Source: Setoptus koraiensis (taxonomy: Eukaryota > Animalia > Arthropoda). Taken from it: a stretch of DNA of 64,000 nucleotides. Below are positions 24,447-40,521 of this stretch, one piece after another. The notes under the pieces are model-generated. The model worked only from the letters and a program-made list of their open reading frames with translations. It had not been told where the DNA came from and searched no databases. The translations under genes were made by a program, and so were the position numbers. Every line of letters begins with the position of its first letter. The first letter of the stretch is position 1. The stretch spans positions 3,782,001 to 3,846,000 of the forward strand of contig CM106586.1 in the NCBI GenBank assembly GCA_048013815.1, written 5' to 3'.

Positions 24447-24845
24447 TTAAAATAATAATAATAACAAAAAATACAAGATTCTGTTCGAACCTCGAAGAAT
24501 AAATTGTAATATTGATTTTTGTTTTATATGAACACAAAACAATTCAGAGGTGATGGCCGCCGTAAAATGATCTGACTGCTATGTGCCGACATCTGCACAA
24601 TCGCATGTGGGCACAAAGGTTAGAGACTTAAATCTGGCGCTCAATTCTGCGCATCGGGGGCAGGCAAAAGTTTTTCCCATTGTTCTAATGTTGATTCACG
24701 CAACTGTGTGGAGATCGTCTCATAGCAGATATTTCATTTCACAGTGGCCATCACCTCTGAATAGTTTTGTATTCGTATAAAACAAAAATCATTATTACAA
24801 TTTATTTTTCGAACAGAACTGTGTATTTTTTGGGAAATTGTCACA

Positions 24846-29977: not shown

Positions 29978-30550
29978 TTAGCGCTTAGGCTGCTTTATTT
30001 TTCTAAATTGTTCCGGAGCATTCAAGTTTTCTCCTTCGTAGAATGTTCTTAATAAATTGACTGCTTCATCACATCTCACTCCATGGATGTATTGCAATTC
30101 AGGCTCACTTTTGATCAAAGATTTATCGGTAACTCTGAGGACGGACCTACATCCCCCAAATCTATCATTTGAGCATCCATAAATGACTCGATTGACCCTG
30201 AGGTGTCTCAAAATTCTGGCGCATTGTATACAAGGTTCACAAGAGACGTACACATCCATGTCGGTCCATTTGATTTTTTCGGAAGAGCCTCCAGTGACAT
30301 TGTTGTTTATGATATCATCTATGCAATTCATTTCGGCGTGTCTTGTGGCGTTTTTCGTCTCGTTCACTCTATTTCTATTGGTAGCCAAGATACGATCGGT
30401 GGTACTATCAACGAATACACAGCCAATAGCAACCTCTCCGTTATCCAGAGCTTCTTTGGACATTTTTAGGCTCAGGTCAAAATAAGCCATATTGAAAGAC
30501 ACGGATTGAGAAATATCTGGCTTCGGTTCGGTTTCTTGTGTTCGATTCAT
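29978..30550 (-). CDS. ADAT2: tRNA-specific adenosine-34 deaminase ADAT2, intronless
   Basis: GEVAIGCVFV, NRVNETKNATRHAEM, VYVSCEPCIQCA and YGCSNDRFGGCRSV. Confidence 0.95.
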   Translation of the reverse strand: MNRTQETEPKPDISQSVSFNMAYFDLSLKMSKEALDNGEVAIGCVFVDSTTDRILATNRNRVNETKNATRHAEMNCIDDIINNNVTGGSSEKIKWTDMDVYVSCEPCIQCARILRHLRVNRVIYGCSNDRFGGCRSVLRVTDKSLIKSEPELQYIHGVRCDEAVNLLRTFYEGENLNAPEQFRKIKQPKR

Positions 30551-30983
30551 AATTGGAGCTATGAGGACTATTTCTAATACTATACAGACATGACAATAAC
30601 ATTCTGCTTATTTCTACAACAGATGGAGGGAGCAAATATTCGGACAGTGAACTTGCGAACATGTGATCTGCATAGCATGTTTTTCTCAATTATCTGGGCA
30701 ATGCGTGCGTTCTTATGGGTAGACGAAGGCATTTGGGTATAAAGGTGTGTCGAATGTTACATATTCAGATTGAATGGGTCCATAATTAGGATATTCTTTA
30801 GATTACAACCATCATGTTGCCCATTTATGCCCCATGTGTGTCAAGCGACCTCTAGTTTTGTATGACAAATATCATTCGTGGTACTAGAGGTGAAATCTGG
30901 ATTGAGGTTTCACGTAAATTGTTCTTCGAGGATGCCCAATTATAGTTATATTTAGATATTCATTGTCCCAAGAAAATCCCCTC

Positions 30984-33032
30984 ATGGCTTTGCTGAATCC
31001 ACACATTACTACAATAGATCTGGGTCTTACCTGTATTCTTCTTGGTATAGGAGCTTGGTATCTTTTGAGGAGTAGGAGGAACGATGCCAAGCCTGGTGTA
31101 GGTATGGGTTTAGATGACAATATGCAGATAGACGAAGGGGAGAAAACCAGCTTGTATGACAGGATGATATCAACCGATCGTACTATAATAGTTTTTTATG
31201 GCTCACAGACAGGAACTGCGGAGGGATTTGCAAATAGACTAACCAAAGATGCGGCCAGATATGGGATGAATGCATTAATAGTCGATGCTGAGAATGCCAA
31301 CTTTAACGATCTCACACTCATTAGCACTATCTCAAATTCATTAGCAGTGTTTTGTCTGGCTACATTCGGTGAAGGAGATTTCACTGACAATGCCAAGGAA
31401 CTACACAAATGGCTCAAGGCTGGAGAAGCTGATCTAAATAAGCTTAACTTTGCGGTGTTTGGCCTGGGAAACAAAACATACGAACATTTCAATGCTGTTG
31501 GTATTTACGCCAATGACAGACTAGCAGAAATGAATGGAAACCGTATTTGTGAGCTGGGTCTGGGTGATGACGACGGAAATATCGAGGACGATTTTATCAC
31601 ATGGAAAGACAAATTCTGGCTTGAAGTCTGTGACAAATTCAAACTTCATGAGGCAAAGAATTTAGTCAACTTCCGTCAATATCAACTGATAGTACATGAA
31701 AACAGGGACGATTTTTACGTAGATGGGAAGTCTGTTGGTCTGTTTACTGGAGAGCCTCATCGCATTGGCTCGTATGAGTCACCGAAGCCACCTCATGGAC
31801 TGAAAAATCCCATACTCTGCCAGCCAATCAATTGTCGTCAGTTATACAAGGGCAAAAGATCATGCATGCATATTGAATTTGATCTCAAACAAAAGCTTGT
31901 GGCCTATGATACTGGTGACCATTTGGTAGTGTTTCCTGAGAATGATCCAGATTTAGTGAACAAACTAGGAGAATTGTTGAATATTGATTTGGACGAGATT
32001 ATTTCAATGAAATGCCTTGATGTGCTGACAGCTAAGAAATACATAATACCATGTCCTTGCACTTTCCGAACTGCTTTCACTTATTACGTGGACATAGCAA
32101 GCCCACCAAGGATGCATACATTGAGAGATTTGTCTAGTTTTGCTCAAGATGAAGAACACAAGAAGTTTATGGAGCTGATTAGTTCATCAAGTGAGAAAGG
32201 AAAAGCTGAATACGCCAAATGGATCTTGAGCGATTGCAGGAATATTGTGCACGTGCTCACTGATTTACCCTCATTCAAGCCTCCTGCAGATCTACTAATT
32301 GAATTGTTGCCACGTCTTCAACCTCGTTACTATTCTGTTTCATCTTCTAGTTCTGCAAATCCTAGCGTAGTTTCAATTACGGCAGTGGTTGTAGAATATG
32401 AAACTCCGGCAGGCCATGTCAACAAAGGTGTTGCAACAAACTTCTTGCAAAGAAAGACTGGTCTATTGAACAAGAATGGCTACAAGGCATCCCCTGTACC
32501 TTTGTGCTTTGTAAAATCAAACTTCAGACTGCCCTCCAAAGTGAAACTATCTCAGGATAATGCAATGCCACCAATTATTATGATTGGTCCTGGCACTGGT
32601 TTAGCTCCGTTTCGTGGTTTCCTACAAGAGATAGAGCATCTGAAGAGGAGTGAAAATTTATCTACATCAGATGTGGTATTGTATTATGGTTGTAGGCACA
32701 AAAATGAAGACTATCTATATGAAGATGAACTCATGAGATGGAAAGAGAACGGTACCCTGACACAACTCAATGTCGCATTTTCACGGGATCAACCGGAAAA
32801 GATCTATGTGACACATTTACTTGAAAAGAATAGAGAGGCCACTTGGGATATAATTGGAAAGCGGAACGGTTGTGTGTATGTTTGTGGTGAAGCTCGATCG
32901 ATGGCCAAGAACGTTCACCAAATTTTCAAGAATATCGTAATGGAGCAGGGACAACTCGAAGAAAAGGCTGCAGATGCTTTCCTCAAAGAGATGGACAGTA
33001 CAAGAAGATATCAGGCAGATGTGTGGTCTTAA
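30984..33032 (+). CDS. POR: NADPH-cytochrome P450 reductase copy A, intronless CDS, 682 aa from first ATG
   Basis: N-terminal TM, FYGSQTGTAE, FGLGNKTYEHFN, RYYSVSSS, MIGPGTGLAPFRGF, YYGCR, AFSRDQPEKIYVTHLL, YVCGEARSMAK and C-terminal DVWS. The track start at 30963 is TTG. Confidence 0.97.
   Translation: MALLNPHITTIDLGLTCILLGIGAWYLLRSRRNDAKPGVGMGLDDNMQIDEGEKTSLYDRMISTDRTIIVFYGSQTGTAEGFANRLTKDAARYGMNALIVDAENANFNDLTLISTISNSLAVFCLATFGEGDFTDNAKELHKWLKAGEADLNKLNFAVFGLGNKTYEHFNAVGIYANDRLAEMNGNRICELGLGDDDGNIEDDFITWKDKFWLEVCDKFKLHEAKNLVNFRQYQLIVHENRDDFYVDGKSVGLFTGEPHRIGSYESPKPPHGLKNPILCQPINCRQLYKGKRSCMHIEFDLKQKLVAYDTGDHLVVFPENDPDLVNKLGELLNIDLDEIISMKCLDVLTAKKYIIPCPCTFRTAFTYYVDIASPPRMHTLRDLSSFAQDEEHKKFMELISSSSEKGKAEYAKWILSDCRNIVHVLTDLPSFKPPADLLIELLPRLQPRYYSVSSSSSANPSVVSITAVVVEYETPAGHVNKGVATNFLQRKTGLLNKNGYKASPVPLCFVKSNFRLPSKVKLSQDNAMPPIIMIGPGTGLAPFRGFLQEIEHLKRSENLSTSDVVLYYGCRHKNEDYLYEDELMRWKENGTLTQLNVAFSRDQPEKIYVTHLLEKNREATWDIIGKRNGCVYVCGEARSMAKNVHQIFKNIVMEQGQLEEKAADAFLKEMDSTRRYQADVWS
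31408..32994 (+). repeat. 1587-bp near-identical direct repeat, copy 1 (partner 38897-40483, offset 7489)
   Basis: By eye I found only 5 substitutions between the two segments. The flanks diverge abruptly. Confidence 0.93.
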
Positions 33033-36000
33033 GGCCTTGTTTCGCTTTGATGTGCCCTATATCACAGAAACACTAGTCGAATATTTGAATCTCATATGAT
33101 GTCACTCACCACGATCCATCATATCAATCGTCGGGGATTACTGTTTTTTAAAGTTTACCAGCTTAGTCGAGTTGCTCCATGTAATAAAATATATCATCTA
33201 CATGATAGATTTCATGGTTCAATTCATTAAATGCCTTTCAGGTATCTAACCTAAAATAGATCAATAATTTTGCCTATCGACGAAGACGTTCTTCAGCTTC
33301 AATGAAAGTATAATCACAAACAGAAAATTGTGTTGATTTGAAATCAGGGATAGAGTTGTTATTCCATCAGTCTTGCGACTGATTGACTGAGACTGACAAG
33401 CCATTGAAATCTTAGGTCGCATCGTGCTTGTATTTACTCGGTCAGTGTTGCGTACCTACATATCAGGTGAAAATTCCATCGAAGTACATATCTGACAAAA
33501 TCCACCCTCAGAAGCGACTATAGTTACTTCATTTTGCAAACTGATCTTGCAAAATTAACCTCTATTCTATGATATCTCTCAGTAATTACACCCCTCCCCT
33601 TTGATGTCGGACGCGCAACTTCTGTCCAAGGTTAAAGAAAATTGTGACCGCGAAGAAATGAAAATCGTATCATCTTTTTCTGTTGCAACCTGAGAGATCT
33701 TTATGTCTCGACCCAACCACAAATCGAATATTAACTTTGACAAGTCCTCATCAGACGACCGATGATAGAGAGCTACCTAAATCAAGGGATTTGTTCGAGA
33801 GATTTCTTGTAAGTAATTCAGATTCCACTTGAATGAGCAGATGAACAATCAGAAACGATCCGTTCACTTTTACAACGTTTCATAGAATAGCTTCATTTTG
33901 CAAGTCTTTGTGTTCATTAGTTGATTGATAAAATTCCTATAATGTTCCAATCAAACTATCGAGTGAGATCATACTGGAGCCGTGATGTTCACATGTGGAG
34001 AGGAGACACTAGCTTCGCATTAGTCATTCTCAAGGCCTCCACAATTCAGTCATGAATAGTGGAAGTTGAATTCACTTCCAAATATTAGATCAGTGGTTTT
34101 TTTTGTCAGGCTTAGAAAAAAAAAAAATAAAACACTAACAAATGTGTGTCAATCTTTCAACTAAATTATTACCTATATTCTACCTACTGTATATTGTTTC
34201 GTTCTATATTCACAGCTACTCGCTAATATAGCTAACAATAAAAGACAGTTGAAGGAAGCTCACAAAACTTCACATAGTAAATAAATTGAAAGTAAGTAAA
34301 GTTACTTCTGACATAACTGCACACCAATACTATAGCATTCTTACCATCCATCCATCCAGTGAAATGAAATGTACCTTGTCAGTGGTGTCTACCAAAAATG
34401 CACTCCAACGTATATTATCTCTTTCATGCTCTCATCCATCTACTACCTGCCCGATAAGTTTAGCTAGAGAGCTTATGAGTTGGTTAATTAATAGTTTGGC
34501 ACCCATCTGACGAGTGAAAGCCACATGATTCATGTAAGCTTGCATTATCATCGCTAGTGCATGCTGTCAGTTTTGGTTGTTTTCTCCACTAAACAACTAT
34601 CACGATAACCATTGACGGATAATCTCTGCAAATGGTGACGCACGTTTGACAATGTTAGACAATGAGAATTACGTTCTCCAGCTATTCTCATGAAATTAGT
34701 CGTGACAAATGAATAAGTATACAGTAGTTATCAGGCATCTTACATCCATTCATTCATCTTATATAATAGGTTGTGATAGGATGATTCACGAAGAGTCATT
34801 TGCACGATCAATTCAAGTTTCACAAAATTTCTGCAACATTGTCGTCACTTAGAGATCTTACACAAAACAAAGTGATACTTCACTCGTTATTACATAGTCA
34901 TCTCCTTAGTCTTATTAGGATTTCATTCTAGTATAAGTAGGCAGTCGGGTATTGAGTGGTAGGTTGTGGAGTAGCCAGCAACAAGTTTGTTCTAAGTTTA
35001 AATCAGGTTCAAGGCTAAAACTACTGTTCCCGTTAGTCGAATCTTTAAAGTAGGCTAAAAGTCGAAAATGTTTTGTCGCTGTTGCTGATGTTTGCATTGC
35101 AATAGAGTTCATTGAGCATATCCGTTTTTTGTTTTGTTTTCTTCTTGTCACTACGACAATATTCAGGTTTAAGTGTTAGTCAGTGTTGTACAACAAGTGT
35201 TGTTGTGAGTCATTTATGTGTCATGAACAAACACTTAAGAACATAGTTGTAGTTGGTTATCTGTGAAATGTAAGTTGAAATAAAACAACGTTATCGTTAT
35301 TATAATGTCTTGTGAGTAGCAATCACACAATTCTAAGCTGTTAGACTGATCAAGATCGCATGCTTTCAGAGTTGTTCGGACAAACACAATGTCTTTTGTC
35401 GTTCCAATGTTAAAAACAATCGCCTGTTGTCCAGCAATTGTGTTGCAAATCCATTTGTTTGTCTTGAATGTTGTCAGATTGGCAGGCAGGCAATCGGGCA
35501 GGCAGACATACAGGCTACGCAGTTGCGGTCAAATCGACTTAAACAACATTCTTAGGCGGCCCCCACTTTCTTTTTTTCCTCATCAAAACTGACACTAATT
35601 GTTTGATGAGGGATTTGCTGGAGGTGGCAAATGGAAATTCTACGCTGTGCCATTGGGCTGTTGATTAGCTAAATGATGATGTTCGCACAAAAGTGAAATT
35701 TTCCCAGATTGTAAGATGTACATGTGGACAGTATTTGGACCTTCACACAAAACTATACAACAGGTGAACGGCTCGTTGGTTACGAGTATAACTTAGAAAC
35801 GCGTGGCTTATTTTGTTTTAGCTCTTTCGCATTCATTTTTTCTTTCTTTCTTTTTCTCCCCCGCAATCTCATTCTATTTATCTGCCTTCCAATAAGACTG
35901 GTTGGGAATTTGGAGAAATTGGAGCTTTTGGTTGGACTCTAGATCTAGGGATCGTGTAAGACCTGTAACAGGATGTAATTGAGCAACAACAACAACTTTT

Positions 36001-36898
36001 ATTGAATGTGAGCAATAATACTAACCGATTTATAACAAATATAGTGGATGTTTGTGTTTGTTGTACTAACAACGTACTTAATATGAAAATGAATTTTTAT
36101 CATACTGATGAAAAAGAAAGCAAACTGTTAGTAAGGAGCAACTTTCCCTTCAAACAATAGTTGAGACAGTGAACAATAATCGGCATTCAATTGATGGGAG
36201 GCGTCTACATGCATTGATGGGTGTGCTCAAAGAACGGTTAGTTAGTTTGTAGCTAGATAAGCTTGTTAAGTTGAAAGTATTTGCCTATACATTTTCTTGA
36301 TTCGATTCATATTCGTTGATGCTTGATTGTTGGAAGCAGCCAGCCGGGCGACCAGCTAGCAGCTTGATAATCGTCACTTAATTTGCAAGGTTTGTTCATT
36401 CACCATGCCTCACCAGTTTGAGCAAAAGTACAAGAAATTCATTAAACTATCCATAGCAAGCCTAGAGGTGAGACAGACTCAAAATCTCGCTGCTACAGTA
36501 TGTATTATGAATCGCTCTCATATAAATTAGAACTCAACCGAGTACTGCAAACAGGTAAAAGCTAATGCTACAAAAAAGAGAGATCTTGTCATGTTTACCT
36601 GTGCGCTGAACTAAACTTCAAAATCGGAAATAGTAGTTTGCAAAAATAGTTGGAAAGGTAGCTCGCTAAAACTCTGAGCCGTGAATTGACTAATTTGGCT
36701 CAAACAACTCACTAGTTGTATTGCTAATAGTGGTAGTATATGATAGTATCGCGTGTATTTAGCGCCTAACTTCGCTTACCACTAATAAACTACGGGGATC
36801 ATTTACGAATAGCAACCAACCTAAGAGAGAAAGCAGGCGCCGAAATTTTATCGCTATATCTTCCATCTACTCTACTTACTATCTTTGCATAGACATCT

Positions 36899-36926
36899 CG
36901 ACGACGACGACGACGACGACGACGAC
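36899..36926. repeat. (CGA)n trinucleotide microsatellite, about 9 units
   Basis: Direct inspection of the sequence. Confidence 0.9.
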
Positions 36927-38235
36927 AGATATCCATGTGAAGTAGTGGGCATCATAATAAACGTCATCACTATCATATAGTTTTAGTTGTACTTAGTTGA
37001 AAGAGCAGCCACATGAATTGTGGAACTAGCATTCCACAATTCACTTGTTAGTTCACCACAGTTTCTTTTCGAAGATTACATCATCACATTGAAACACACA
37101 AATAGACAGACAAACAAACGCTCACACTGGTTCACATAAAGTCGGACTACAATTTTATAATAATCTATTTATCTCAACGTGTATATAATGTACATGTAGC
37201 AATATTGATTGATGTACTAGAAACACACCAACAATTGTTATCATTATTGTTGCAAAATTGTTGTTGTTATTGACAAAACAACATCATGACCAGTGTGTGA
37301 TAGTGGTGATTTAATTAAATGATCAGTCAATAGTATCTTCTATCTGATACCTGATATTCAACAATTATATACTTCGCTGTCGACACAACAACATCAGAAT
37401 GCCAGTAAGTCACCGTGTCAGTGAAAGTCTATCAACCTCTGTGCTATAATAGTAGCTATATATAAGAAATTACCTAGTTGTTAGCTCATATCAGTTACCA
37501 AAGCAAATAAACTTTGATCAACTGTTTCTACGAAACGAGAAGAAATAAACAAAAGACAAGGATAAATATAAAATAAACCTTGAAACAGCCAAAGAATTCA
37601 ATTGAAACAACAACAGAACAACAACACTTTCTGACTTCTTCTTATTGTAAACATTGTGTCACAATGCGTGTGTGTGTATGCGGGTTTGGTGCCGATCAAC
37701 AAGTCAATTAGCAAGCAGCTCAAGATAAGGCTCGCATCTTTACTTCAATTTATTTTTATTTTACCTGTACACATTGTATTCACTCAAGACGCTGAGTCAT
37801 ACCGTCTAGATAAACTATCAGTACTTATCGGGAAATGATTCATTTTAACTACATTTACTCATATGTGAATAGTGTAATCAGCAACAGATGATATCAATTA
37901 TAACATTTAGCACACACAAAATCAGTCATGGCCACATGAAAAGCACATTGGAAACAATTTGAGAAAACACACAACAAGCCCGAGTCTCTATCTTTATTTC
38001 GTTATTATTCAAGTCCGACAAAACTATCGGTGGAACCAATAAATCAATCGGATTTCAACGAATACCACAATTCATTATAGCGCCTCATTAATCCTACATT
38101 AGATGAAGTAGATACGCGCATTCTCTTTAGACGACGCCACCTGATAACCGCTTTCCAGAATTCTGCAAATCTTATCAAATAGCATATCTGAAATTTTTTG
38201 GACTCAAGCCTAATAATCCACCTAATACTAGCACC

Positions 38236-40521
38236 ATGGATTTGGCAATAAATTCTATTCTCAGTACACATATTAGCCCAACGGATGTGGCATTAACATG
38301 TATACTGCTCGGCATTGGAGCCTGGTACCTGATAAGCAAGAGGAATACAGCGGAGCAGGACGTAGACTTGTATTTAAAAGAGTAGGTTTTGAGAGAGTAG
38401 TACCTTTGTTACTCATTTTAACATACACAAGACATTATACAGAGTTAGACTCGTGAATTGATTATACTTCCATCGCTATCTTTCCACTTCCATAGAGTTA
38501 CATATATAGATAGCCCCGATGAAACTGGTAGGGATAGCTTATACGAAAAGATGAAGTCCACAGTAAGTCGGAACTGCCCTCTAAGCAAACTAGCCCAAAA
38601 TACTTGCTACAAAAACCTTGTTCATTAATTGTGCTGCGGCCATTTACTACTCACTGTCACTTAGGATCGTACCATGGTTGTCTTCTATGGTTCTCAAACA
38701 GGAACAGCGGAAGAATTTGCTAACAGACTCACCAAGGATGCAGCGAGGTATGGAATGAAAGCGTTAGTCGCTGATCCTGAGGAGGTAAACTTCGACGACC
38801 TGACACACATATGTAACATCCCAAATTCACTAGCAGTATTCTGTCTAGCTACATACGGCGAAGGTGATCCAACTGACAATACCCAAGAATTCTATGAATG
38901 GCTCAAGGCTGGGGAAGCTGATCTAAATAAGCTTAACTTTGCGGTGTTTGGCCTGGGAAACAAAACATACGAACATTTCAATGCTGTTGGTATTTACGCC
39001 AATGACAGACTAGCAGAAATGAATGGAAACCGTATTTGTGAGCTGGGTCTGGGTGATGACGACGGAAATATTGAGGACGATTTTATCACATGGAAAGACA
39101 AATTCTGGCTTGAAGTCTGTGACAAATTCAAACTTCATGAGGCAAAGAATTTAGTCAACTTCCGTCAATATCAACTGATAGTACATGAAAACAGGGCCGA
39201 TTTTTACGTAGATGGGAAGTCTGTTGGTCTGTTTACTGGAGAGCCTCATCGCATTGGCTCGTATGAGTCACCGAAGCCACCTCATGGACTGAAAAATCCC
39301 ATACTCTGCCAGCCAATCAATTGTCGTCAGTTATACAAGGGCAAGAGATCATGCATGCATATTGAATTTGATCTCAAACAAAAGCTTGTGGCCTATGATA
39401 CTGGTGACCATTTGGTAGTGTTTCCTGAGAATGATCCAGATTTAGTGAACAAACTAGGAGAATTGTTGAATATTGATTTGGACGAGATTATTTCAATGAA
39501 ATGCCTTGATGTGCTGACAGCTAAGAAATACATAATACCATGTCCTTGTACTTTCCGAACTGCTTTCACTTATTACGTGGACATAGCAAGCCCACCAAGG
39601 ATGCATACATTGAGAGATTTGTCTAGTTTTGCTCAAGATGAAGAACACAAGAAGTTTATGGAGCTGATTAGTTCATCAAGTGAGAAAGGAAAAGCTGAAT
39701 ACGCCAAATGGATCTTGAGCGATTGCAGGAATATTGTGCACGTGCTCACTGATTTACCCTCATTCAAGCCTCCTGCAGATCTACTAATTGAATTGTTGCC
39801 ACGTCTTCAACCTCGTTACTATTCTGTTTCATCTTCTAGTTCTGCAAATCCTAGCGTAGTTTCAATTACGGCAGTGGTTGTAGAATATGAAACTCCGGCA
39901 GGCCATGTCAACAAAGGTGTTGCAACAAACTTCTTGCAAAGAAAGACTGGTCTATTGAACAAGAATGGCTACAAGGCATCCCCTGTACCTTTGTGCTTTG
40001 TAAAATCAAACTTCAGACTGCCCTCCAAAGTGAAACTATCTCAGGATAATGCAATGCCACCAATTATTATGATTGGTCCTGGCACTGGTTTAGCTCCGTT
40101 TCGTGGTTTCCTACAAGAGATAGAGCATCTGAAGAGGAGTGAAAATTTATCTACATCAGATGTGGTATTGTATTATGGTTGTAGGCACAAAAATGAAGAC
40201 TATCTATATGAAGATGAACTCATGAGATGGAAAGAGAACGGTACCCTGACACAACTCAATGTCGCATTTTCACGGGATCAACCGGAAAAGATCTATGTGA
40301 CACATTTACTTGAAAAGAATAGAGAGGCCACTTGGGATATAATTGGAAAGCGGAACGGTTGTGTGTATGTTTGTGGTGAAGCTCGATCGATGGCCAAGAA
40401 CGTTCACCAAATTTTCAAGAATATCGTAATGGAGCAGGGACAACTCGAAGAAAAGGCTGCAGATGCTTTCCTCAAAGAGATGGCGAACAGCCGAAGATAT
40501 CAAACCGACGTGTGGTCTTGA
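38236..40521 (+). CDS. POR: NADPH-cytochrome P450 reductase copy B; exons 38236-38381, 38496-38562 and 38665-40521, 689 aa
   Basis: Exon 1 MDLAINSILSTHISPTDVALTCILLGIGAWYL matches the copy A anchor. GT-AG introns at 38382-38495 and 38563-38664 keep frame and give ...SLYEKMKST|DRTMVVFYGSQTGTAEEF. Canonical TYGEGDPTDN is present. Confidence 0.95.
38897..40483 (+). repeat. 1587-bp near-identical direct repeat, copy 2
   Basis: Matches 31408-32994. Confidence 0.93.

Follow-up and report, generated by a model that had tools for sequence, protein, structure and literature searches.

A tandem pair of cytochrome P450 reductase genes in a phytoptid eriophyoid mite, probably of old origin and partly homogenised by putative gene conversion

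[quoted passage not shown] In animals generally, CPR is usually a single-copy gene (PMC4616063). The window analysed here, a stretch of 64,000 nucleotides from Setoptus koraiensis (contig CM106586.1, positions 3,782,001 to 3,846,000) that is free of N gaps, contains two intact CPR genes on the same strand at 30984-40521 (+), designated copies A and B, which are 96% identical over their whole length. This raises the question of whether the pair is a fresh duplicate in which an intron loss can be watched, a product of the assembly or an older arrangement, and what role a second reductase might have. The host is a conifer-feeding eriophyoid mite; other mites and insects have one CPR gene.

The first-pass annotation of this stretch had described two full-length, same-strand CPR genes about 5.2 kb apart, one with two 5' introns and the other without them, the second intron being precisely absent. 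This description was borne out in all respects, with a gap of 5,203 bp, outer boundaries at exactly 30984 and 40521, introns of the GT-AG type that contain in-frame stops, and an absent intron that left no indel (Table 1). When the frame of copy B is read unspliced, six stop codons are encountered within the two inserts. The protein of copy B was analysed exon by exon and by reference, and the trees took exon 3 only. A gene, a non-coding RNA or a repeat in the 5.2-kb spacer was ruled out by an ORF scan (no ORF of at least 80 aa), by Rfam (no family) and by its uniqueness in the genome; no recognisable gene was seen within it.

Table 1. Coordinates, within the window, of the two CPR genes, their parts and the putative conversion tract
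Feature	Coordinates	Strand	Description
CPR copy A	30984..33032	+	single ORF, ATG 30984 to TAA 33032, 682 aa, intronless
Copy A domain order	30984..33032	+	membrane anchor, linker, FMN, FAD, NADPH domains
Intron 2 site in copy A	31175..31176	+	phase 0, ...IST/DRT..., intron absent without indel
Unconverted first half of A FMN domain	31176..31424	+	fast-evolving segment
Putative gene-conversion tract, A side	31425..32994	+	1,570 bp, A residues 148-670, 4 differences from B
Spacer between copies	33033..38235	.	5,203 bp from A stop to B ATG; single self-match in genome
Copy B exon 1	38236..38381	+	146 nt, membrane anchor, ends in phase 2
Copy B intron 1	38382..38495	+	114 nt, GTAGGT...CCATAG, GT-AG, phase 2, ancestral position
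Copy B exon 2	38496..38562	+	67 nt, linker, C-terminal ...SLYEKMKST
Copy B intron 2	38563..38664	+	102 nt, GTAAGT...ACTTAG, GT-AG, phase 0, ancestral, directly 5' of FMN domain
Copy B exon 3	38665..40521	+	FMN, FAD, NADPH domains to stop; canonical sequence
Putative gene-conversion tract, B side	38914..40483	+	ungapped, offset 7,489 bp from A tract

Both proteins contain the Pfam domains Flavodoxin_1 (PF00258), FAD_binding_1 (PF00667) and NAD_binding_1 (PF00175) above cut-off, and the FMN domain of copy A gives a gap-free alignment with solved CPR structures (E = 1e-65). A hydrophobic N-terminal anchor (...LTCILLGIGAWYL...) followed by basic residues can be read from the sequence of both, as can the SQTGTAE, RYYS, CG.AR and C-terminal DVWS motifs and the FMN ring loop, the latter in altered form in A. 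The top matches of both copies are named CPRs of ticks, spiders, mites and insects with 47-54% identity, and both fall within the chelicerate CPR tree, while other diflavin loci of the same genome are just 26-36% identical to them. Judged by these comparisons, A and B are orthologous to CPR and not to NOS, MTRR or NDOR1. They are the sole CPRs in the 48.8-Mb genome, where the next-best paralogues reach at most 36% identity, and no further CPR relics or exons were found in the spacer or elsewhere in the genome. Both copies are predicted to encode catalytically competent reductases anchored in the ER, B being most likely the housekeeping P450 reductase, and their conservation would imply that B is spliced and that A is transcribed.

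The overall identity of 96% is owed to a single tract of 1,570 bp. Indeed, the comparison of A with B yields a mosaic, which is about 25% diverged at 31176-31424, near-identical at 31425-32994 and once more diverged over the final 38 bp. Within the tract the copies differ at four sites (31583, 31708, 31856 and 32060), whereas the rest of the alignment contains 73 differences in 287 nt (Fisher p = 9e-58), and dS is 0.009 in the tract as against 1.71 in the 5' segment of exon 3. In this segment (31176-31424) 61 of 249 nt differ, with 14, 7 and 40 differences at the first, second and third codon position, respectively, and a dN of 0.13. The longest identical run between the copies measures 934 bp and was equalled in none of 100,000 permutations. 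The tract comprises the second half of the FMN domain and the connecting, FAD and NADPH domains, amounting to about three quarters of the coding sequence. From this pattern the near-identical block is read as interlocus gene conversion with sharp edges, within old paralogues. As to the direction of conversion, the root-to-tip length of the tract is about that of the sister clade, and the same is true of the unconverted part of B, which hints, although not decisively, at a tract of the conservative type.

A coincidence of the 5' tract edge with a lost ancestral intron (...NFA/VFG..., at about 31454/5) was considered and dropped. The edge is bracketed merely to 31425-31582, and with about 10 ancestral intron sites in 1.86 kb an overlap between edge and intron is expected by chance.

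A second copy might also be created by the assembly, as an uncollapsed haplotype or another false duplication of a single locus, which the first-pass annotation had named as the outcome that would overturn its reading, or the tract might have been made during assembly or polishing. The published Setoptus koraiensis assembly was built with Flye from noisy CLR reads and went through two rounds of short-read polishing, and it derives from a pooled wild sample of more than 100,000 mites with a heterozygosity of 1.13%, a value above the 0.25% difference found in the tract. Haplotype duplicates, however, would have common flanks and introns, whereas flanks and spacer are here non-homologous and unique, introns are present in one copy only, and 24% of the sites in the 5' coding parts differ, distributed over codon positions as is typical of prolonged purifying selection. 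In addition, making a sharp-edged block of 1.6 kb uniform between sequences with about 25% divergence elsewhere is not something that an assembler or polisher would do, so that at most the identity has been inflated; the 99.75% identity of the tract may be overstated if the assembly used here is the published, short-read-polished CLR/Flye one from pooled mites. With flanks, intron content and codon-patterned 5' divergence all distinguishing the copies, a single duplicated locus was not borne out, and we regard an assembly origin of the pair or of its tract as very improbable.

The pair is thus treated as genuine, and its age can be judged from the unconverted parts. A local duplication, as had been proposed, is upheld by the non-homologous flanks and by unconverted coding differences that lie mainly at third codon positions. 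With synonymous sites saturated outside the tract (dS about 1.7) and no homology between the flanks, the duplication is old, and we consider it probable that it is a tandem duplication specific to the lineage of this phytoptid eriophyoid mite. A recent duplication is ruled out by the saturated dS outside the tract. A and B are adjacent, have the same orientation and are sisters in the gene tree: on 83 unconverted columns they form one clade (support 98/95), whose sister group consists of 21 other eriophyoid-like CPRs. This clade could itself be the product of an older conversion, in which case the duplication would predate the split from other eriophyoids. Every one of the 21 eriophyoid-like CPRs outside the pair is a single ORF (verified on contigs for five), and each of the five loci checked in their contig context has a single intronless CPR without tandem partner, in accordance with the literature (PMC4616063) and with the earlier statement that CPR is normally single-copy. 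In public data, where A-type orthologues were sought, the closest relatives reach just 60-65% identity, and every one of them is B-like. The neighbourhood of CPR shared nothing except CPR itself with other eriophyoid-like contigs, so that synteny was of no help in dating the duplication.

The ancestral intron state was derived from four outgroups, namely the scorpion Centruroides (12 introns) and the trombidiform mites Tetranychus, Halotydeus and Dinothrombium. Intron 2 of B occupies the same site and phase in all four, and in each of them a phase-2 counterpart of intron 1 precedes intron 2 by 55-64 nt. As both introns of B reside at ancestral arachnid positions and phases, it follows that A lost both and that B gained none. 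Of about 12 ancestral introns, B holds just the two most 5'. At the site of intron 2, copy A reads ...ATA TCA ACC/GAT CGT ACT..., as compared with ...TCC ACA/intron/GAT CGT ACC... in B, and exon 2 of B is colinear with the intronless eriophyoid-like CPRs (...VEYID...SLYEKMKSTDR...).

The opposite polarity, with an intronless ancestral eriophyoid CPR and two introns gained by B after the duplication, would agree with the single ORFs of all 21 other eriophyoid-like CPRs. Two independent insertions at exact ancestral sites are implausible, however, given that position and phase of both introns coincide with those of four distant arachnids and that the small exon between them measures 67 nt here and 55-64 nt in the arachnid outgroups. 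Moreover, with A and B sister to all 21 others, one loss in the latter and one in A suffice. Intron gain is accordingly extremely improbable, and intron loss in A is retained as the reading.

Eriophyoid genomes have undergone massive, mostly precise and 3'-biased intron loss, which has been ascribed to reverse-transcriptase-mediated intron loss (RTMIL) (PMC7738191), and an additional wave of intron losses has been placed at the crown of the Eriophyidae (bioRxiv 10.64898/2026.08.24.746826). Hallmarks of RTMIL are present in our pair as well, including the precise loss at the intron 2 site, the 3' bias of the losses and the absence of two adjacent introns from A. The genome also contains many intact reverse-transcriptase ORFs, with 49 or more RVT_1 matches of which many fall in long open frames, and this would permit a cDNA route. 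A cDNA-mediated loss in A is plausible but unproven, since saturation on either side of the lost introns makes a cDNA route look the same as an exact genomic deletion. Of the earlier proposal, the intron loss in A stands, given the ancestral positions of the introns in B, whereas the notion that it had been caught side by side does not, dS of about 1.7 making the pair ancient. Not being a fresh intron loss, the pair does not by itself decide between mechanisms of intron loss, the question raised by Greenhalgh et al. It also reveals that a basal eriophyoid lineage retains ancestral introns which are gone from its sampled relatives.

The lack of introns would likewise be explained if copy A were a retrogene, derived from a reverse-transcribed, fully spliced ancestral mRNA instead of a tandem duplication at the DNA level. 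A is indeed wholly intronless, its homology to B is confined to the coding sequence (none was detectable in non-coding flanks or introns, for the flanks even at word size 7), reverse-transcriptase ORFs exist in the genome, and retroposition is among the possible routes to intronless genes in Greenhalgh et al. (PMC7738191). However, by our estimate a random insertion in 48.8 Mb would come to lie as A does, only 5.2 kb upstream of B and on the same strand, in about 2 of 10,000 cases, and no poly(A) remnant is visible 3' of the stop codon of A. Because dS is saturated, both models predict that no flank homology would be left, and its lack does not discriminate between them. A retrogene origin thus appears unlikely, and we continue with a tandem duplication at the DNA level.

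The two copies have not evolved alike since. In A, the substitutions E81G, P102A, Y128F and P133F, all of them in the unconverted segment 31176-31424, affect columns which are invariant in B and 31 other CPRs and which align gap-free with solved CPR structures. Y128F and P133F belong to the FMN ring loop and E81G lies just after the phosphate loop; all four altered residues are FMN-loop or docking-face positions. In the 83-column tree the terminal branch of A has a length of 0.37 and that of B a length of 0, and relative-rate counts are typically 11:2 with A being the faster. For the unconverted part dN/dS is 0.08 for the pair, or about 0.15 with every amino-acid change assigned to A; both copies are under purifying selection.

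One may ask whether one of the copies, most likely A, is instead redundant or decaying and looks intact owing to repair by conversion from B. The branch of A is faster, three quarters of its length have been overwritten by conversion, and four invariant residues have been changed, including the position of the FMN-stacking tyrosine and an adjacent proline. The unconverted parts of A, however, which are beyond such repair, are still open and conserved despite saturating synonymous divergence, with the low dN/dS given above. The anchor LTCILLGIGAWYL is identical in the proteins of A and B in spite of synonymous differences in 10 of its 13 codons, and the exchange of tyrosine for phenylalanine keeps the aromatic side chain. 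Decay of A is therefore quite doubtful, and we regard A as a maintained gene.

Taken together, the following history would account for the locus. A single arthropod-type CPR, presumably already down to its two most 5' introns, would have undergone an old, lineage-specific tandem duplication. B would have retained both ancestral introns and the canonical protein, whereas A would later have lost both introns, precisely at the second site, recombination with spliced cDNA being the most likely route. Substitutions would then have built up about five times faster in the anchor, linker and first FMN half of A than in those of B, under purifying selection throughout, while gene conversion would have kept the rest of the coding sequence, three quarters of it, almost identical. 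The two genes might thus provide a common catalytic module with a choice of two front ends, A possibly serving only some of the partners or tissues. A role in xenobiotic or plant-toxin metabolism, as raised in the first-pass annotation, would be conjectural. The genome has only some 30 P450 loci. Rather tentatively, we suggest that A could be a neofunctionalised second reductase with a less acidic FMN docking face and an anchor and linker of its own, which shares the FAD/NADPH "engine" with B through recurrent conversion. If true, this would be a modular setup of "two heads, one body", maintained for a long time in a highly streamlined animal genome.

The long retention of a second CPR in a genome shaped by the loss of genes and introns suggests selection for two distinct reductases, and a second CPR needs to be considered in any work on P450s or CPR of eriophyoids. 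A single stretch of 9.5 kb displays three processes, namely 3'-biased ancestral intron loss, asymmetric divergence after duplication and gene conversion bounded by domains. These processes are known ones, and we regard the evolutionary case assembled from them as solid and moderately interesting.

Among known systems, the single-copy CPR of Tetranychus urticae and T. cinnabarinus has the same layout of anchor, Flavodoxin_1, FAD_binding_1 and NAD_binding_1, is 49% identical to the present pair and has its first two intron positions in common with copy B. In comparison with it, at least 10 downstream introns are gone here, and A differs at positions where all 31 comparison sequences agree. The RTMIL proposal for Aculops lycopersici likewise involves precise, indel-free losses with 5' introns kept and 3' introns lost; unlike there, the intron-bearing and the intronless state coexist here as paralogues in one genome.

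Two or more CPRs are also kept over the long term in plants, as the class I and class II paralogues (ATR1 and ATR2 in Arabidopsis), and in fungi, the N-terminus being the most different part. Those paralogues are dispersed and diverged over their full length, whereas the mite pair is in tandem with three quarters of its coding sequence homogenised, and the mite duplication is independent of theirs and falls within an animal lineage. Globin and opsin pairs of primates are the classical cases of interlocus conversion with sharp tract boundaries and, like the mite pair, contain a sharply bounded identical block in otherwise old paralogues. Unlike in those, the mite tract covers a functional module, the FAD/NADPH half together with the second half of the FMN domain, and leaves the anchor and the first FMN half free to diverge.

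The two genes for NADPH-cytochrome P450 reductase (CPR) in the window, copy A and copy B, are both complete and on the same strand, one intronless and one with two introns, as the first-pass annotation had described them. If the frame of copy B is left unspliced, six stop codons lie within the two inserts, and after splicing the frame is colinear across both junctions with the intron-free reductases of related mites. Flavodoxin_1, FAD_binding_1 and NAD_binding_1 domains are present in both proteins, as are an N-terminal hydrophobic anchor and the usual cofactor motifs. Searches and alignments of copy B were run on its separate exons, by reference, and the trees include its exon 3 alone.

Features of the CPR locus (positions in the window)
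Feature	Position	Strand	Description
Cytidine/tRNA-adenosine-deaminase-like gene	29978-30550	-	dCMP_cyt_deam_1, 190 aa
CPR copy A	30984 (ATG)-33032 (TAA)	+	single ORF, 682 aa
CPR copy B, exon 1	38236-38381	+	begins with ATG 38236
CPR copy B, intron 1	between exons 1 and 2	+	114 nt, GTAGGT...CCATAG, phase 2
CPR copy B, exon 2	38496-38562	+	
CPR copy B, intron 2	between exons 2 and 3	+	102 nt, GTAAGT...ACTTAG, phase 0
CPR copy B, exon 3	38665-40521	+	

A six-frame search of the whole genome (contigs C1, 24,221,962 bp, and C2, 24,533,333 bp; 48.76 Mb in total) retrieved A and B as the only CPRs, the next diflavin paralogues being at most 36% identical. A second CPR in an arthropod is an unusual gene-content feature, and here it is real and well resolved. 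Two diflavin-reductase-like open frames of 1390 and 1296 aa (L003 at G000:C2:14.135 Mb and L004 at G000:C1:0.938 Mb) show 35-36% identity to the C-terminal half of CPR and are possibly two NOS-type genes.

In blastn, positions 31176-33030 match 38665-40519 with 96% identity and 0 gaps, and the match is confined to exon 3 of copy B, from its first base to the stop codon. The 77 differences are placed very unevenly: 61 fall in the first 249 nt and 12 in the last 38 nt, with four in the 1,570 nt of 31425-32994, a tract spanning residues 148-670 (tract versus remaining alignment, Fisher p = 9e-58). The longest identical run, 934 nt, was reached in 0 of 100,000 permutations (permuted maximum 375 nt). 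In the 5' segment outside the tract the differences are distributed 14/7/40 over the codon positions, giving a Nei-Gojobori dS of 1.71 (pS 0.67, essentially saturated), a dN of 0.13 and a dN/dS of 0.08, whereas dS within the tract is 0.009. The anchor motif LTCILLGIGAWYL is the same in both proteins with synonymous differences in 10 of 13 codons, and the flanks of the two genes, compared over 2 kb on each side, have no detectable similarity even at word size 7. A and B are therefore an ancient duplicate pair, both under purifying selection, which carries an interlocus gene-conversion tract that is recent or recurrent. The saturated 5' segment and the flanks without shared sequence contradict the earlier idea that the event is recent and was "caught side by side".

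The same mosaic of divergence, the contrast in dS and the unrelated flanks exclude that one copy is a duplicate arising from a second haplotype or from assembly. The published assembly of Setoptus koraiensis, a member of the Phytoptidae living on Korean pine, is at chromosome level (two chromosomes, N50 24.53 Mb) and was obtained from a pool of >100,000 wild mites with PacBio CLR, Flye and short-read polishing; its annotation was made without RNA-seq (PMC11920263). Polishing may at most have made the two sides of the tract look more alike than they are. All four residual differences within it (31583, 31708, 31856 and 32060) lie within its first 636 bp, and over the remaining 934 bp the copies are identical, a placement with a chance of ~0.03; the tract possibly consists of two nested conversion events differing in age.

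In the unconverted FMN segment (31176-31424, A residues 65-147) the proteins mismatch at 21 of 83 residues. Changes specific to A outnumber those specific to B with every one of 31 outgroups, typically by 11:2 (p ~0.02; range 8:3-13:1). E81G, P102A, Y128F and P133F in A affect columns that are invariant in B and 31 other chelicerate CPRs, and several acidic residues have been replaced as well (E104N, D108N, E142K); this stretch has a net charge of -3 in A, as compared with -8 in B and a range from -8 to -10 in chelicerates outside the eriophyoids. Its alignment to solved mammalian CPR structures is gap-free; the numbering of 9ef0_A (678-residue chain) is that of A plus 12, which places Y128 at residue 140 in the ATYGEGDPTDNA loop. 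We take the tyrosine at this position to pack against the FMN ring and its replacement by phenylalanine to be tolerated, and the DPEE loop presumably has a part in partner docking. Even if every amino-acid change is put on A, its dN/dS is ~0.15. A decay of copy A is contradicted by the parts beyond the reach of conversion repair, which stay conserved. Judged by sequence, B looks like the housekeeping enzyme and A like a constrained yet modified paralogue, which might serve different partners.

The spacer between the two genes (33033-38235; 5,203 bp) is of unusual length for a genome this compact and contains no ORF of ≥80 aa and no Rfam family, nor was a further copy of it found in the genome. 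The deaminase-like gene is divergent from copy A, with 434 bp separating the start codons (30551-30983 between), and the two could share a bidirectional promoter. Besides A/B, the sole self-match in the window is an inverted repeat (24492-24599 / 24707-24812) of ~108 bp and 84% identity, its arms ~110 bp apart. Genome-wide there are ~30 P450 loci; matches clustered at G000:C2:19.62-19.81 Mb, among them nearly identical frames of 381 aa (at 19763475, 19799613 and 19806182), look like a local expansion.

The closest public relatives of A and B are 21 other eriophyoid-like CPRs from Logan/ENA assemblies (60-65% identical, each a single ORF of 684-727 aa), followed, at ≤54% identity, by named CPRs of spiders, ticks and mites. 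The five inspected on their contigs (L010, L012, L015, L024 and L025) have one uninterrupted CPR ORF each, with no second CPR in the 1.2 to 10 kb available on each side and no neighbour gene shared with the window. Dating of the duplication rests on a maximum-likelihood tree of the 83 unconverted columns, in which A and B are sisters (support 98/95) and the pair is sister to the 21 (92/95), thus branching outside all of them; the terminal branch of A has a length of 0.37 and that of B a length of 0.00. This topology suggests a duplication specific to the Setoptus koraiensis lineage, or else an earlier origin may have been erased from the sequence by older conversion.

Exon structures of annotated CPRs were obtained by matching each spliced sequence exactly to its own genomic locus. 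In Tetranychus urticae, Halotydeus destructor, Dinothrombium tinctorium and the scorpion Centruroides vittatus the linker is interrupted by a phase-2 intron, and all four have a phase-0 intron 55-64 nt after it, adjoining the start of the FMN domain (...KMK(S/T)(S/T)|(G/N)R...). Both introns recur in copy B in matching phases, 67 nt apart (...KMKST|DRT...); they are therefore ancestral to arachnids and were lost from copy A, the second one exactly. Precise absence and direction of change had both been proposed in the first-pass annotation, and the four outgroup maps bear out the latter while excluding intron gain in B. The oribatid Oppia is without these two introns and has kept others. That copy A is a retrogene is possible but unlikely, because it lies in tandem with B on the same strand and shows no poly(A) trace. 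What explains the pair is a set of ordinary processes: tandem duplication long ago, ancestral intron loss, asymmetric divergence and gene conversion.

With the lineage placed outside all 21 relatives, two losses would suffice to leave introns in B only, one along the branch that leads to them and another in copy A. This fits the second wave of 394 intron losses reported at the Eriophyidae crown (bioRxiv 10.64898/2026.08.24.746826). The cDNA-mediated loss suggested for copy A is plausible but unproven: at least 49 matches to reverse-transcriptase domains occur in the genome, many of them within long open frames, which makes this route possible, but around the sites of the lost introns divergence has gone too far to tell whether a cDNA intermediate or an exact deletion in the genome was involved. 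The reverse-transcriptase matches are concentrated at G000:C2:0.27-1.04 Mb and G000:C1:3.06-3.27 Mb. In Aculops lycopersici, where 84% of genes are intronless and losses proved precise in 97 of 100 cases examined, Greenhalgh et al. described 3'-biased intron loss, tentatively ascribed to a reverse-transcriptase-mediated process (PMC7738191). Copy B, which retains only the two most 5' introns where the CPR of Centruroides vittatus has 12, fits the same 3'-biased pattern.
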